DNA from: Octopus bimaculoides
Taxonomy: Eukaryota
Direction of reading: 5' to 3'
Length of the DNA: 39,012 nucleotides
Assembly: GCF_001194135.2 (NCBI RefSeq)
Contig: NC_068987.1
Location: 42,507,523 to 42,546,534, forward strand
Below the pieces are notes generated by a model. It saw nothing but the letters and a program-made list of their open reading frames with translations. It had not been told where the DNA came from and did not search any database. The position numbers and the translations under genes were made by a program. Shown piece by piece: positions 4,900-39,012 of the stretch; within the stretch, counting starts at the first letter, position 1; the number at the start of each line of letters is the position of its first letter.

Positions 4900-5590
4900 A
4901 CATAAGCAATCAGAAACATTATGTAAATAGGGTGATCCATCGCTTGCCTGGTTGAAAGCTAAGTTTTCGCAGTCGAAATGAACTAGAATTTCTTCCGTCC
5001 AACTGCTGTTAATCTAAATTTATTCCAGCTGTTCAGATTCTAGTTACAATGCTGTCATTTCTCTTTGATTTTGATATCAACACACACCAGATCCTCTAAT
5101 TAACAGACATTTATCTAGTAATCCTAGTGTGGTCTGTGTAAATATAGCGGTTCTGATGTGTAGCAGGAACTATCGTCAATGATAGTGTCAGAATTGCTAC
5201 CACGACGCAGAGCTTTGCTGCTTTGCATATATTTAAAAGGAAAATCGCTCAAGCAAAATCACAACAAAAACAATCCCCCCACTTTTCTTAAAATATCGAT
5301 TTGACGAAACGAAACAGATAATTAAAACAATCGATTTATCCGCATATGTGGAAGGAATGCATTATTTGCTTTAGCAACATAGAAATTGAAAGATTGCAGA
5401 GTAAATGAATGTAAGGAGTCAGGTGTTGTGGGACGTAATCAAAGGGGAGACAATCATTTTTGCTTTCAGAGAATGTCACTAGGAGTGCGCGAAGCTAGAT
5501 GATTGCACAGAAGCATTAACACCGCCATGATTGCTGTGTTTGAAGTGGGTGTGTAAAGATTGCAGTTTTGAGAGACATTGAAAATTAATC
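4900..5590 (+). promoter_or_regulatory. Probable promoter/5' UTR of the RhoGAP gene
   Basis: Visibly more CpGs than the flanking AT-rich DNA and no recognisable TE. In-frame TGA at 5579-5581 upstream of the ATG; strong start context (A at -3, G at +4). TSS not located. Confidence 0.4.
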
Positions 5591-8218
5591 ATGGGACTGC
5601 GACCGCTGGAATTCGCGGAATGTTTAACAGATAGTCCGTATTTTCGAGAGAATTTACACGAGCATGAAAAAGAATTGGAAAGAACAAGCAAATCTATCAA
5701 AAGCTTGATAGCTTGCGGAAAAGAACTCATTAACGCTGCGAGAAATCTGTCGAAAGCCCAGAAAGCTTTTTCACAAAATCTACAGGAATTTCGATTTGAA
5801 ACAATAGGAAATCAACAAACTGATGATGAAGTAGTAATTGCAGCTTCTCTCAAGGAGTTTGGAGATTGCTTCTTAGCAATTGAGGAAGTATTTGAAAGAA
5901 TGCTAGATAAAGCAAAAGATATGTTTTTGGCCCCTTTGGAAAGGTTCCGTAAAGAAAACATTGGAAAAGCTAAAGAAGAAAAGAAACAGTTTGAAAAACA
6001 AACATCTAAATTTTGTGCTTCACAAGAGCGCTATCTCAACTTGAAACCGAAAACTAACGACACTACATTCCAAGAGGCTGATGCAGCTCTTGTTTTGGAA
6101 GGTAAGCATTTTTACCAAGCATCCATGAAATATGTTCTTTTATTACAAGAAGTGCAAGAGAAAAAAAAATTTGATTTTGTCGAAATTATTCTTACATTTA
6201 TATCTAATTGGTTAACTGTTTACCATCAGGGCCATGAAGTGGCTAAAGAATTTAAAACTAACATGAGTGACCTGCAGCTACGATTGCAGAACACGCGAGA
6301 GAACTTTAATAGTACTAGGGATGAAGCGGAACTTTTGATGAATAAAATGTTGGAGACCAGAGGTTCTCGTGGTGAGTTTACTCTGGCCCCTAAGGACTGT
6401 ACTCGACAGGGTTACCTCTTTCTCATGGAGAAAAAAGCTCTTGGTACTAACTGGACGAAATGCTACTGTCGCTATTTCAAGGAACATAAAACTTTCTCTA
6501 TGATTCCCTATAATCAAATGGTTGGCAAACTCAGTCAACCAGAAACAGGGATTCTTATGTCTTGTATAAGGAGAGCATCTGATTCCATTGATAAACGATT
6601 TTGTTTTGATATAACTATTTCTGACAAGCCAACTGTAATCTTTACATTCCAAGCATTGTCCGAAGATGATCGACACTTATGGCTCGATGCTATGGATGGA
6701 AAAGAACCTACCTATCAAACTCCCAGCAAAACGTCTGAAGAGACCTATATTTTGGATAGCATTGGGTTTCAGTTTATCAATAAATGTATCGGTTCTATAG
6801 AGAGAAGAGGCCTGACAGACCAGGGTCTCTATAGATTGGTTGGTGTCAACTCGAAAGTAAACCGACTCGTTAACATGGGACTTGATCGTCGAAAAGCTGA
6901 TAAGCTTTGCTTAGATGACACTGGAACCTGGGAAGTGAAAACAATCACCAGCTCCATTAAACATTATCTTAGATCTTTACCAGAACCTTTGATGACCTTC
7001 CGTTTGCACGAGAATTTTATCACTGCTGCCAAACGTGAGTCTAAACTTTTGCGATTTCATGATATACATAGTCTTGTACATAAGCTGCCTCAAAAGAACT
7101 TCAAAATGTTAGATTTGCTATGTAGTCACCTAAAAAGAGTTTCAGACAAGAGTGATATCAACCTTATGACTGTTGCCAACCTCGGCGTGTGTTTCGGACC
7201 AACTCTAATGCGGCCCGAAGAAGAGACTGTGGCCGCTATAATGGATATTAAATTTTGCAATATCGTCATTGAAATTTTAATAGGAAACTATGAAGAGATT
7301 TTCAAACAGACACCTGTAGATATTGGACTTTTAGATGATCTGGAGGATTGTAAATTGTCACCTGCTGAGAGTACAACTACCACAAAGACAAGCTTGGAAA
7401 ATCAAGCTTTGCCTTCAGGTACCTCTAGTCATGGAATACCTCCATCTCCTGTTTCTGCGACACACTATAGCAATGTATCATCAACTGTTAATTCAAGTCC
7501 TGGTTTGCCTAAAAGTGGACCCTTCGCTGATCATGGCTCTCCAAAATGTGCAGCTCCTGTTGTGATGCGATCGCATAATTTACCAAAAACTAGATACCAG
7601 GGTATTGGACACGGTCATCTGAGTCAAGTTGGTGCTGCTATTGGTGGAGTTCATATGACGGGTCACGATCCCAGTCGTGGTAGCAGTACCAGCGGGAGTT
7701 CAGAATCCTTGAATTCTTACAAATCCCCTTCGACAAACCCTTCGCCTCAATTGGATTCTAATCGTAGAGGCCCTATTATGCCTGCAATGTTTACAAGTGC
7801 CCCAGCATCTGCTTTCTCTGGATCCAAGATTCAGACTCTTGGCGATATTGGGACGTTTGGCAGTATTAAAAGGCGTAACGCCACTGAGTCGTATGCTGGT
7901 GGTGGAGGAGGAGGCAGCGGCGGCTTGAGTGTTGGGGGAGGTGCTTTACGTTCGTCGATGCACAGTGGCACGACTAGCAGCAACGTTGGGCTCCTTCCAG
8001 ATTCATCTTCTGCCATGTCTAAGTCTATGACTGAACAGCGCTTACGTACTGTTCGAACTCTTTACAACTGCCAGGCAGAAAATGATTCTGAGTTGTCTTT
8101 TCATGCCAACCAATTCATCTATCAGGTGAAACCATCGCAGGAAGCTTGTTGGTTAGAAGGGACACTGGATGGTGTGACAGGGCTTATACCTGAGAATTAT
8201 GTGGAGTATGTTGATTAG
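5591..8218 (+). CDS. Graf: GRAF/oligophrenin-family Rho GTPase-activating protein (ARHGAP26/ARHGAP10/OPHN1/Graf-like), single coding exon, 875 aa
   Basis: Uninterrupted ORF. N-terminus MGLRPLEFAECLTDSPYFRENL matches the GRAF start. BAR about aa 1-255; PH about aa 271-373 (RQGYLFL..KRFCFDI..QALSEDDRHLWLDAMDGKEP); RhoGAP about aa 388-573 with the arginine finger GLYR (R415, nt 6833-6835) and MTVANLGVCFGPTLMRP; low-complexity linker; C-terminal SH3 from about aa 819 (ELSF..WLEGTLDGVTGLIPENYVE). Confidence 0.97.
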   Translation: MGLRPLEFAECLTDSPYFRENLHEHEKELERTSKSIKSLIACGKELINAARNLSKAQKAFSQNLQEFRFETIGNQQTDDEVVIAASLKEFGDCFLAIEEVFERMLDKAKDMFLAPLERFRKENIGKAKEEKKQFEKQTSKFCASQERYLNLKPKTNDTTFQEADAALVLEGKHFYQASMKYVLLLQEVQEKKKFDFVEIILTFISNWLTVYHQGHEVAKEFKTNMSDLQLRLQNTRENFNSTRDEAELLMNKMLETRGSRGEFTLAPKDCTRQGYLFLMEKKALGTNWTKCYCRYFKEHKTFSMIPYNQMVGKLSQPETGILMSCIRRASDSIDKRFCFDITISDKPTVIFTFQALSEDDRHLWLDAMDGKEPTYQTPSKTSEETYILDSIGFQFINKCIGSIERRGLTDQGLYRLVGVNSKVNRLVNMGLDRRKADKLCLDDTGTWEVKTITSSIKHYLRSLPEPLMTFRLHENFITAAKRESKLLRFHDIHSLVHKLPQKNFKMLDLLCSHLKRVSDKSDINLMTVANLGVCFGPTLMRPEEETVAAIMDIKFCNIVIEILIGNYEEIFKQTPVDIGLLDDLEDCKLSPAESTTTTKTSLENQALPSGTSSHGIPPSPVSATHYSNVSSTVNSSPGLPKSGPFADHGSPKCAAPVVMRSHNLPKTRYQGIGHGHLSQVGAAIGGVHMTGHDPSRGSSTSGSSESLNSYKSPSTNPSPQLDSNRRGPIMPAMFTSAPASAFSGSKIQTLGDIGTFGSIKRRNATESYAGGGGGGSGGLSVGGGALRSSMHSGTTSSNVGLLPDSSSAMSKSMTEQRLRTVRTLYNCQAENDSELSFHANQFIYQVKPSQEACWLEGTLDGVTGLIPENYVEYVD

Positions 8219-9130
8219 TTCTGTTTGGCTTATCCTTGACGGGCTGACTGGCATTCTCTCTCATTTTTTAAAATCTTGTTCATATAAAATGTTCTCAGTT
8301 TCAGATTTTTATGAAAGGTAGAAGGAATGTTAACACCGTTCACTTTTTTTTATATCTATTATCGTCAGCAATGTTTTAAAAATAGCCTTAAAACAAAATT
8401 CAGACAATCTTAATGCAAAGTGATATTTTGCTTAGTATGCATATATATATATATATATATANNNNNNNNNNNNNNNNNNNNNNNNNNNNNNNNNNNNNNN
8501 NNNNNNNNNNNNNNNNNNNNNNNNNNNNNNNNNNNNNNNNNNNNNNNNNNNNNNNNNNNNNNNNNNNNNNNNNNNNNNNNNNNNNNNNNNNNNNNNNNNN
8601 NNNNNNNNNNNNNNNNNNNNNNNNNNNNNNNNNNNNNNNNNNNNNNNNNNNNNNNNNNNNNNNNNNNNNNNNNNNNNNNNNNNNNNNNNNNTTTAAAATG
8701 TTTTTTTTCTTTCCCACCCACATTTAACAAGAAAAGTAACTTTTTAACAATTTTAATTCAATCAGTTATGTCAACTTTTATTAAGAATTTTAGATTCCTG
8801 AAATATTGCTTATAGGGAACAGGAACATATTTCAGCAAATAAATTATACTACAAAGTCTATGAATGCAAACCTATTCGAATGCAACAAAAAAAAAAACTT
8901 CTATGTCTGTATTTAAAGATTAGCAACAAACTTTTTATTTTTATTTATTACTTTCATTTTTTGTCAATATTTTCTGCATTTATGCATGCATAAATTATGA
9001 CTTAGAGGGAAGTCATGAAATATATATCCTGTGTGCGCCTGTATACGTCGAAGTCCAACTGATTATAATTTAATCTATAAATATACCCCTCAAGTAATTA
9101 ATATTAAAAATGGAGAGTTACCTGGAATAC

Positions 9131-10217: not shown

Positions 10218-10898
10218 GGCGGAGGTAAAAGACATGGGCCGCACCCCTTTTCGGTTATTATTTTTTTTTCTTCTTCTACAGAACCCTATCTTTTCGACTG
10301 CGGAGATTCCGAATCTGCAAAACAAAAATCGGCATTTCAAAATTNNNNNNNNNNNNNNNNNNNNNNNNNNNNNNNNNNNNNNNNNNNNNNNNNNNNNNNN
10401 NNNNNNNNNNNNNNNNNNNNNNNNNNNNNNNNNNNNNNNNNNNNNNNNNNNNNNNNNNNNNNNNNNNNNNNNNNNNNNNNNNNNNNNNNNNNNNNNNNNN
10501 NNNNNNNNNNNNNNNNNNNNNNNNNNNNNNNNNNNNCTCTGCCTAATAAAGGATTATCTGTCGGTTGGTTCTCATTAAATGATATTCAATAAAATTCTTA
10601 GCTTTAAGAAATTAAAATTTTCAAAACGTGTTTTGGGGTTGTTCAAAATCTTCAATTTTTAAGTACTCTCCAATTGGAAAGTCCGACAAGCTAGAAACAA
10701 CAGCCAAACCGAAGATCCACTTTCTAAATACGAATTAACAAAAAAGGAAAAAAAACTTTTAAATGTCATTTTGTTGTGTGTGCGTGTGTGCAAAAGAACT
10801 AATTTTTACATACCTCTCTTAATTCCTAATTAAAATTTTGAAAAGATGGGTTTCTGTAGAAAAAGAAAGGGGGGGGGTCCATGTCCTTTACCTCTGCC
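10218..10898. mobile_element. Non-autonomous TIR transposon with 9-bp TSD (Mutator/MULE-like)
   Basis: Left end ggcggaggtaaaagacatgggccgcacccc..ttctacagaaccctatctttt; right end (reverse complement) ggcagaggtaaaggacatggacccccccc..ttctacagaaacccatctttt. Flanks are taacaaagg (10209-10217) and taataaagg (10899-10907). The element contains an assembly gap. Confidence 0.7.
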
Positions 10899-36447: not shown

Positions 36448-36856
36448 TTCCAGAAACAATGTATCCGTGGATGGAATGCCGCGTCACGTGCTGGACCTGC
36501 ACAGGATAGCCACTTTGTCAGATGAAGAGCGCAATGGAAACAAGGCACCTGGCTTGAGAAGATCTCGACATGTAAGGCGCCCGCCTGGTTGGATGGCGGA
36601 CGTGATCTTTAAGATCAGGGTGGCGTGTGGTATGACGTCAGCGACTGGGGAGCTGACCGGAAGGGCGAGTCGACCAGAAGAGGAAGAAGGGCAGAGGGAG
36701 CCTTGATCGGGATTTCGTGCCCTTTTCGAATGGGGTTGTTGTGAGGAGAGGATGTGCCAAGCGACGGTCTAGGTTTGGGAGAAGCAGCTGCTATTTCTAG
36801 TGTTCTTTGAGTTTGTCCTGCGGTATCCGATCCTCGCAGCTGGCCCGACCCGAAGA
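36448..36856 (+). mobile_element. Gypsy integrase C-terminal tail plus LTR start (TG at 36626)
   Basis: SRNNVSVDGMPRHVLDLHRIA..RRSRHVRRPPGWM is near-identical to the reverse complement of 36945-37149, followed by tgtggtatgacgtcagcg and running into a gap. Confidence 0.85.
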
Positions 36857-36944
36857 NNNNNNNNNNNNNNNNNNNNNNNNNNNNNNNNNNNNNNNNNNNN
36901 NNNNNNNNNNNNNNNNNNNNNNNNNNNNNNNNNNNNNNNNNNNN

Positions 36945-39012
36945 CACACGCCACCCTGATCTCAAACATCACGTCCGCCCCTACTCCACTTCGAAGTCCA
37001 CCATCCAACTGGGCGGGTGCCTTACATGTCGAGATCTTCTCAAGCCAGGTGCCTTGTTTCCATTGCGCTCTTCATCCGACGAAGTGGCTATCCTGTGCAG
37101 GTCCAGCACGTGACGCAGCATTCCATCTACGGATACATTGTTTCTGGAATTGACTGCTGTCACTGTTCCCCTGCCCCATTGTGATGTGCAGCATGCCTTC
37201 GGCGGCTTGACCCAAACTTCCTCCCCTACTTTCACGCCGGCAGGTCCCTTCTCTTCCTCGCAGTACTCCGGCGTCTTACTGGGATGCTTCCATTCATACT
37301 TGAACACTGCTCTGTGCGGCACAGACTCTTCCGCTTGTCCGGGTCGGGGAGACATGTTATACCAGTAGACTGTTCTCGGGGGTGAAACGTGACCCCTTTC
37401 AGCCATGGCGTTGATCGTCCGATGGTGCCTCTCAACGATTCTGTTGCCGCTCGGCCTATACGCCGCTCTGAACAATCGTTGCACCTTCCACCGGTTGAGC
37501 ATCTCCCCCAATGCTTCCGAACGAAACACTGCCCCATTGTCCATTAGCAGTTCTTCCATGGGACCCCTCTCCCAGAACATCCCGTTCAAAATGCGGGCAA
37601 TCTCATCAGTAATGCCTGTCCTCAGCTCCCTCCAAATGGCCAGTCGACCATGCTGAGATACATTCCCTGACGGTAGTGCGTCACATCCACAGCTACTCTC
37701 CTCTGGTTGTGCTCTACCGAGAGGTTCACTTGCTCATGCTCACTCGGGGTGGGGTCAATGGACTGGCACCTGTCACAGTTCCCGGCCACTTTCTTGACGC
37801 TTCCCCTAGTGATGTCAGCATCGATCATCTTTGCGAGATACGGGGTCCTGTCCACCACCAAGTGGTGCATAGCATGTAGCTTCTTCTGTTTGGAGTTATC
37901 CAGCCGACATGCCGCAGCTATCCCTTTCCTTGCTTCCTCTGGCTCCTCCAGCTACGCCCTTTTCACCCTGGTCAGTGCGTCTGCCCTGTTTCTCTCCGAA
38001 GGCACGAAAACCACGTTCAGCTTCAGTCCAAACTTGGCGACCAGCTCTCCTAGAACTCTTAGACAGCGTTTCATCAACAACTCCGTGACCCCTTTCGTCT
38101 TGACTCTCCTCTCACTGGTAATCACCGATCCTACCCAGCCGACCACGGTGGCTGAATCTGCCTGGATCTTGATCAAGTGAAGCCCCCCATCTCAGGGCTA
38201 AGTTCACCCCTTTCAGCACCGCATGTAGTTCAGCGACATTGATGTGGTTGAAGTCGTCTGTTTTCCGTAGCCAGGCTGCATCCTCCACCTCAGCACCTTC
38301 GATCTCCAACACAACCACTATCGCTATACTGCTAGCATCACACCAAACCGTCCCGCATTCTGTATTGGGCACATACCAGTNNNNNNNNNNNNNNNNNNNN
38401 NNNNNNNNNNNNNNNNNNNNNNNNNNNNNNNNNNNNNNNNNNNNNNNNNNNNNNNNNNNNNNNNNNNNNNNNNNNCCCCAACTCTCCCTCTCTGCTCGTC
38501 TATTGGTGTAACTGCACGCTGTGCACAGCCATCCAGCGATCGGGTAGTGTCCAACCAACTTCCCACAAGCCGAGAACAACTCTCCTGCTGACGCTGGAAC
38601 TCAGCTCTGGGATCTCGTTTCCTCTCCGGAACACCAGCTCACCCGATCTGCCTTTTTGTAGTTTCAGCTCCCCCCACCATCGAATCTGGCGGCTTCCCAA
38701 TCAGCCGAAACCTCTCCAGGTGTCTCACTACCTCGGTGGCTGGCACTACAGTCTTGTCAACCAAAATGTCGTCAATGTAGGAACTGGTGGCCTTCCTTAT
38801 CCTCTCCTCTTTCCCTAGGATGGACCTGAGCACCATTGCCATGATTTTCGGAGTGGAATTCAGCTGCAAATATGCCGACTTCAAGTCGACGATCGTTGCT
38901 GCCTTGGTCGACTGTCTTCACACACGTAACGTCTCACCGCAAACGTCCATTGCCTCGCCTCCCCTGTGGCATGATATATGTTCGTTCAGCTCCCTAAAGT
39001 CCAGCACCGGTC
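36945..39012 (-). mobile_element. Ty3/Gypsy LTR retrotransposon pol (RT - RNase H - integrase), disrupted; continues beyond the window
   Basis: RT: DFRELN, VDLKSAYLQ, YIDD (38768-38779). RNase H: VWCDASS, HINVAEL, ADSATV. Integrase: HH..CDRC zinc finger, VAVDVTH, LMDNG, GNRIVERHHRT. The RT-RH-IN order is Gypsy-type. Deletions, frameshifts and a gap are present. Confidence 0.95.

Follow-up and report, generated by a model that had tools for sequence, protein, structure and literature searches.

How does a gene that other animals carry in many exons come to be encoded by one uninterrupted exon? This question is raised by a RhoGAP gene in a stretch of 39,012 nucleotides of the Octopus bimaculoides genome (assembly GCF_001194135.2, contig NC_068987.1, positions 42,507,523 to 42,546,534 of the forward strand), referred to below as the window. 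The encoded protein belongs to the GRAF family (ARHGAP26/GRAF1, ARHGAP10, ARHGAP42, OPHN1 and Drosophila Graf), in which vertebrate ARHGAP26 and Drosophila Graf are multi-exon genes. A preliminary description of the window, made from the letters alone, proposed an old retrogene that possibly replaced its parent. The analysis presented here leads us to favour, with moderate confidence, an orphan retrogene that arose by retroposition and was followed by loss of the parental gene before the crown coleoids.

Gene structure and encoded protein

The gene consists of one open reading frame (ORF) at 5591..8218 on the + strand. It comprises 2628 nt including the stop, encodes 875 amino acids (aa) followed by TAG, and is by far the longest entry in the ORF list of the 39-kb window. 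The reading frame is complete and free of any coding intron. Pfam searches placed a BAR, a PH, a RhoGAP and an SH3 domain, with a linker before the last, in the order that defines GRAF-type RhoGAPs and is found in all the family members named above. The features of the gene are:

5591..8218, + strand: complete single-exon coding sequence (CDS) of the coleoid GRAF/ARHGAP26-like RhoGAP (ORF, Pfam, identity to a gene model)
5606..6322, + strand: BAR domain of the APPL/GRAF type, aa 6-244 (Pfam PF16746 BAR_3, E 3.4e-71)
6404..6694, + strand: PH domain directly after the BAR domain, aa 272-368 (Pfam PF00169, E 1e-7, 32.8 bits with a cut-off of 25.1)
6773..7219, + strand: RhoGAP domain, aa 395-543, with the R415 codon at 6833-6835 (Pfam PF00620, E 5.9e-39)
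7316..8035, + strand: Ser/Pro/Gly-rich linker, aa 576-815 (dN/dS, outgroup alignment)
8051..8206, + strand: C-terminal SH3 domain, aa 821-872 (Pfam SH3_9/SH3_2, E 1e-8; SH3_9 at aa 824-872, 34.9 bits with a cut-off of 30)
5579-5581, + strand: in-frame TGA four codons before the ATG (upstream scan)

Two further in-frame stops are located upstream of this TGA, at most 50 codons from the ATG, and the N-terminus MGLRPLEF pairs with the first residue of both snail proteins, those of Lottia and Elysia. Both observations indicate a full-length ORF. In an alignment of 127 GRAF proteins, the arginine finger R415 (GLYRLVG) as well as K457 and N530 are invariant in 126-127 sequences. The residues that mark an SH3 domain, W854, P867 and Y825, are conserved in this alignment too. 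Hence, the preliminary description was correct in reporting an uninterrupted CDS with four GRAF domains, an intact arginine finger and an in-frame stop just 5′ of the start codon. The closest solved structure for the GAP domain is that of chicken GRAF (1F7C, E 3e-76). The SH3 domain matches the oligophrenin-like and ARHGAP10 SH3 structures 1UGV and 2MIO, while the BAR-PH region matches the BAR-PH structures of APPL1 and ACAP1.

The protein is 100% identical to an O. bimaculoides gene model on chromosome CM046607.1 (assembly GCA_001194135.2). Its cluster at 90% identity also includes an O. vulgaris/O. sinensis protein annotated as 'rho GTPase-activating protein 26-like'. The gene is already annotated, and it is its structure and history that are at issue here. 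The BAR-PH module of GRAF1 attaches to PI(4,5)P2-rich membrane and curves it, the GAP domain turns off RhoA and Cdc42 by means of the arginine finger, and proline-rich partners, among them FAK and dynamin, are recruited through the SH3 domain; overall, the protein acts in clathrin-independent endocytosis and cytoskeletal remodelling. Since all four domains and the key residues are conserved, the coleoid protein should work in the same way, curving membranes, acting as a GAP for RhoA/Cdc42 through Arg415, recruiting partners through SH3 and controlling endocytosis and actin.

Distribution of the intronless gene

The single-exon structure is not confined to the window. In the assembly of Argonauta hians the gene spans 2601 nt and encodes a protein of 866 aa; in that of Sepia pharaonis the figures are 2673 nt and 890 aa. 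Both spans are exactly as long as the CDS. Contigs colinear with the GRAF CDS were found for a second Octopus (L009), a second Sepia (L006/L007) and another decapodiform (L011-L013). Synonymous sites are saturated between octopods and decapodiforms (pS approx. 0.78-0.82). As the intronless state occurs in octopods and in cuttlefish, the event must predate the split of Octopodiformes and Decapodiformes, which molecular clocks place very roughly 250-300 million years ago. This distribution across three coleoid lineages indicates that the intron loss is at least as old as crown Coleoidea, and it bears out the age assigned to the gene in the preliminary description.

In A. hians an identical 866-aa protein is encoded at two loci (L001, BAAFZT010000078.1; L002, BAAFZT010000004.1). 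The two are colinear with 97-98.5% identity over more than 15 kb including the flanks. Judged from this colinearity, haplotigs or a very recent segmental duplication are more probable than separate retrocopies, and the pair was rejected as a duplication bearing on the origin of the gene.

The orthologues of two gastropods are organized differently. In Elysia chlorotica the gene covers 54 kb and contains at least 24 coding exons; in Lottia gigantea it covers 26.7 kb with at least 20 coding exons. About 19 exon boundaries of both snails, derived from TBLASTN high-scoring segment pairs with a precision of 1-3 residues, fall on the same Octopus residues, and all of them are without counterpart in the coleoid gene:

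Shared snail exon ends, in Octopus aa: 52, 82, 105, 128, 162, 200, 234, ~257, ~282, 314, 327, 346, 385, 407, 432, 460, 570, ~815 and ~844

Seven of these introns, after aa 52, 82, 105, 128, 162, 200 and 234, interrupt the BAR region. Their common positions indicate that the shared introns are ancestral at least to gastropods. The preliminary description had named a gene already single-exon across molluscs as the state that would contradict it; Elysia and Lottia both have a multi-exon gene. Annotations of outgroup genes list up to approx. 26 GRAF isoforms (names in the protein-search listings), and the part of the outgroup models that varies or undergoes alternative splicing corresponds to the linker.

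Two consecutive GAP-domain exons of the Elysia gene are doubled in tandem (L008 41310-42268 and 43156-44125). The Elysia gene model P0005 takes in both copies of the exon pair, so that aa 483-564 are repeated as 577-666. This doubling is either a real duplication or an assembly artefact.

Orthology and selection

A multi-exon parent was sought by protein searches against 5.8 billion clusters, with three queries: the full protein, aa 1-575 and the BAR domain by itself; the statements that follow refer to the best 120 of approx. 3,600 matches per search. Among these matches there was no second cephalopod GRAF, neither complete nor fragmentary, in agreement with the earlier suggestion that the copy replaced its parent. 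Four cephalopod clusters displayed 85-100% identity, followed by nothing above 66%. The interval between 66% and 85% was devoid of cephalopod proteins and transcript contigs, among full-length as well as short-fragment matches. A retained parent is expected to be at least as close as the outgroup orthologues, and this gap therefore speaks against its presence. In a neighbour-joining tree, none of the Logan and JGI sequences grouped with cephalopods; they fell with annelids, bivalves, gastropods and arthropods. The 39-kb window itself contains no GRAF-like remnant elsewhere. The window gene is functional and apparently the sole member of the GRAF family (ARHGAP26/10/42/OPHN1-type) in coleoids.

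In the neighbour-joining tree of aa 1-575, a distance tree without support values, the cephalopod proteins make up a single clade with an unremarkable stem, nested within Mollusca. Over this region the coleoid protein shares 60-66% identity with protostome and hemichordate GRAF. Compared with GRAF of annelids, hemichordates and arthropods, the cephalopod proteins reach 62-65% identity, the same level as other molluscs, which argues for an orthologue and not a divergent extra copy. A fast-evolving, neofunctionalized retrocopy was rejected on account of these normal identities.

Selection on the gene, a point that the preliminary description had left to later analysis, was estimated by the Nei-Gojobori method on four unsaturated pairs. 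The dN/dS values, all far from neutrality, were 0.057 for Octopus-Octopus, 0.058 for Octopus-Argonauta, 0.046 for Sepia-Sepia and 0.063 for Sepia compared with the other decapodiform. By region, the ratio was 0.02-0.035 for BAR-PH-GAP, approx. 0.02 or less for SH3 and 0.12-0.20 for the linker. Between the two Octopus species the CDS is 94-96% identical, compared with 74-85% for the flanks. Substitution patterns thus point to strong purifying selection on coleoid GRAF without rate acceleration.

The 5′ leader

Immediately upstream of the gene, the leader contains a conserved element composed of two motifs, an upstream ATG in a strong context and the sequence GGGTGTGTAA:

5523..5556, + strand: coleoid-conserved 5′ leader element; upstream ATG at 5527-5529 in the context CGCCATGAYWG, followed by GGGTGTGTAA
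Corresponding element in other loci: L001/L002 9933-9965; L003 9922-9964; L006 1912-1954; L011 20-62

In O. bimaculoides GGGTGTGTAA closes an upstream ORF of 9 codons (MIAVFEVGV and stop). The upstream ORF of Sepia reads MTVYSACGWVGV and stop, while that of Argonauta uses a different frame and ends at TGA; the coleoid upstream ORFs comprise 9-12 codons. Octopus, Argonauta, Sepia and the second decapodiform have both motifs at identical offsets, and the leader is conserved across all sampled coleoids despite saturated synonymous sites. Such conservation suggests that the leader may be a translational control element or a piece of the core promoter. Neither motif is present at the Lottia or the Elysia locus.

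The snail genes carry a different upstream sequence, the palindrome CGCATGCG, which resembles a promoter motif of the NRF-1 type. It is located 108 nt upstream of the GRAF start in Lottia (L014 9893-9900) and 218 nt upstream in Elysia (L008 2783-2790). It is absent from the 5.6 kb upstream of the Octopus gene, from the whole Octopus window and from the Argonauta and Sepia flanks. The sole copy near the Octopus gene lies approx. 8 kb upstream (L010 1979-1986).

Repeats and gaps in the window

No neighbouring genes were recognized in the remainder of the window. A GC-rich block at 36400-38950 on the - strand (48-55% GC compared with approx. 30% around it) contains degenerate pieces of LTR retroelements, including RNase H/reverse transcriptase-like ORF fragments, and is interrupted by N-masked stretches. 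The features assigned in this part are:

36984-37733, - strand: weak integrase core (Pfam)
38112-38579, - strand: DUF7047 (Pfam, E 6e-14)
8462-8691; 10345-10536; ~25200-25790; ~36700-36800; ~38300-38480: runs of N (masked or assembly gaps)

Two further ORF fragments on the - strand (25868-26464 and 22996-23400) did not reach any Pfam threshold; from their appearance they may represent the C-terminal end of a reverse transcriptase from a non-LTR retrotransposon and a transposase of the Tc1/mariner type. The abundance of RTE and PLE reverse transcriptases noted in the preliminary description was not confirmed, as Pfam recovered only the weak integrase core and DUF7047. SINE-like short interspersed repeats at 24949-25108 and 32251-32343 are common to Octopus and Argonauta with 70-94% identity. 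They are present in many copies in L001/L002, amounting to several per 22 kb in Argonauta. The run of N at 8462 starts 243 nt past the GRAF stop, right after a (TA)n microsatellite, and hides part of the probable 3′ UTR.

Discussion

The intronless gene of coleoids stands against multi-exon orthologues in the gastropod outgroups, is maintained by purifying selection and is unaccompanied by a paralogue among the matches listed. From these observations we infer an RNA intermediate, a new locus and loss of the parent, which together make up the orphan retrogene that we consider the likelier origin. In this scenario, reverse transcription in the germ line of a stem coleoid would have copied the mature spliced mRNA of an ancestral gene with approx. 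22-25 exons, at a time before Octopodiformes and Decapodiformes separated. A full-length spliced mRNA is the probable template because some 20 or more introns, including the first, were removed precisely and simultaneously. The cDNA would most likely have been inserted at a new locus, become transcribed there and taken over the function. Subsequent loss of the multi-exon parent would complete what has been termed 'retrogene replacement' or an 'orphan retrogene'. A single long-linker isoform would thereby have been frozen. The preliminary reading of retroposition or cDNA-mediated intron loss is supported by the multi-exon gastropod genes, the low dN/dS, the state shared by coleoids and the lack of a listed paralogue.

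Several points weigh against a retroposed replacement. The structure of the outgroup gene at the DNA level is that of two gastropods, Elysia and Lottia, and the absence of the parent was judged from protein and transcript databases, not from a genome-wide TBLASTN. A poly(A) tract or target-site duplication, the classical hallmarks of retroposition, was not recognizable around the gene, as the preliminary description had already remarked. No gene that might reveal a change of locus is called within 10 kb of GRAF in Octopus, Argonauta and Sepia; the flanks in the window and the 10 kb around the coleoid loci yielded only degenerate transposon fragments in ORF lists and Pfam searches. Furthermore, the Lottia neighbours RanGAP1, NOA36 and a WD40 protein are not present in the 39-kb window, and when these Lottia flanks were compared with all cephalopod loci by TBLASTX, the single match was at noise level. 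As to expression, Logan contigs of approx. 2.8-3.0 kb bracket the CDS, are colinear with the genomes and have low-complexity ends; they may derive from RNA or DNA, and one of them begins with an Illumina adapter.

The missing hallmarks are in keeping with the age of the gene. The similarity between Octopus and Argonauta ends 1 nt ahead of the ATG and 7 nt past the stop, so close to the CDS that a poly(A) tract or target-site duplication more than approx. 250 million years old would have decayed anyway. The first AATAAA on the + strand is found approx. 620 nt past the stop, and this hexamer occurs at near-chance frequency in the AT-rich window. A run of A residues approx. 45 nt after it was rejected as a poly(A) mark, being unremarkable in DNA of 23-30% GC.

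The most serious alternative, possible though unlikely in our view, is a loss of the introns in place, by recombination of the ancestral locus with its own full-length cDNA (reverse-transcriptase-mediated gene conversion) and without a second copy at any time. The outcome in sequence would be the same: a single copy, an orthologous position in the tree, no acceleration and strong constraint. Precise removal of introns with preservation of the frame in a single-copy gene is typical of such events, the lack of a poly(A) tract and target-site duplication fits this reading, and the conserved leader, being contiguous with the CDS, could be the original 5′ UTR. However, the event would have had to erase some 20 or more introns, including the first at codon 52, spread over a locus that probably measured tens to hundreds of kb. 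Animal genes that lose introns by way of a cDNA usually lose only part of them, preferentially towards the 3′ end. Such loss typically affects one or a few adjacent introns, whereas every coding intron is gone from coleoid GRAF. The absence of the gastropod palindrome near the coleoid gene hints weakly at a proximal promoter other than the ancestral one, and the absence of the coleoid leader motifs from the Lottia and Elysia loci is likewise a weak point. It is for these three reasons, the last two of them weak, that retroposition is preferred over loss in place. If the introns were nevertheless lost in place, the gene would show strikingly that erasure of introns through a cDNA can be complete in an animal.

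We regard it as very improbable that the gene is an ordinary retro-duplicate whose multi-exon parent persists in coleoids, unannotated, split by giant introns or too divergent to be found. Gene models are often poor where cephalopod genes contain very long introns, the matches seen were the best of a much larger number, and the search rested on protein clusters rather than on the genome. Nevertheless, the empty interval of identity and the position of the Logan and JGI sequences outside cephalopods do not fit with a persisting parent. Moreover, the intronless gene evolves at the normal rate of an orthologue, unlike most redundant retrocopies. An artefact in which cDNA contamination or mis-assembly mimics an intronless gene is negligible: apart from the N-masked stretches of the window nothing specific speaks for it, the same structure is seen in independent assemblies of O. 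bimaculoides, O. vulgaris/sinensis, A. hians (two loci) and S. pharaonis, and the gene sits in species-specific non-coding flanks that diverge like neutral DNA.

Retrogene replacement is known from other animals, with amphioxus SYCP1 and tetrapod Sowah as precedents (PMC5803294); Krasnov 2005 and Ciomborowska 2013 are known to us as cited in that article for the same process. AmphiSYCP1 has acquired a new position beside the ParaHox cluster, and its expression has been demonstrated (PMC5803294). Like AmphiSYCP1 (approx. 3.2 kb), coleoid GRAF (approx. 2.6 kb) is a large single coding exon in place of a gene that is multi-exonic in relatives. It also resembles orphan retrogenes in that no parental copy or transcript is detectable among the matches listed, that the state is found in all sampled species of the clade and that function is retained, as judged here from constraint. 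In contrast to AmphiSYCP1, coleoid GRAF is known here from sequence, its change of locus is deduced, and the event is older, dating to crown Coleoidea at least. It differs from the other members of the GRAF family in having one coding exon instead of approx. 20-25 and in the lineage-specific sequence of its linker. The searchable literature on cephalopod retrogenes, intron loss and ARHGAP26 contains no report on the coleoid GRAF gene. The gene is a fresh example of a known process in a known gene family, and its protein is an ordinary annotated orthologue.

If retro-replacement is correct, this would be an unusually large case, in which a gene of more than 20 exons was swapped for its own cDNA copy and kept under constraint for hundreds of millions of years. 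It would represent a rare and cleanly datable change, a synapomorphy-like marker for Coleoidea or, depending on Nautilus, for Cephalopoda. It would also provide a natural experiment in which a heavily alternatively spliced gene was fixed as one isoform under new cis-regulation, as a single coding exon makes alternative splicing of the coding region impossible in coleoids. GRAF genes have neuronal and endocytic roles in other animals, and coleoids are known for A-to-I recoding. It is conceivable, although we attach little credence to it, that the replacement provided the gene with a new regulatory landscape and a leader with a conserved upstream ORF and ended splicing, that isoform diversity now comes from, for example, A-to-I recoding, and that the event is one datable piece of the genome reorganization that accompanied the evolution of the coleoid nervous system. 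In that case, a regulator of endocytosis and synapses would have come under new cis-regulation in the stem coleoid.

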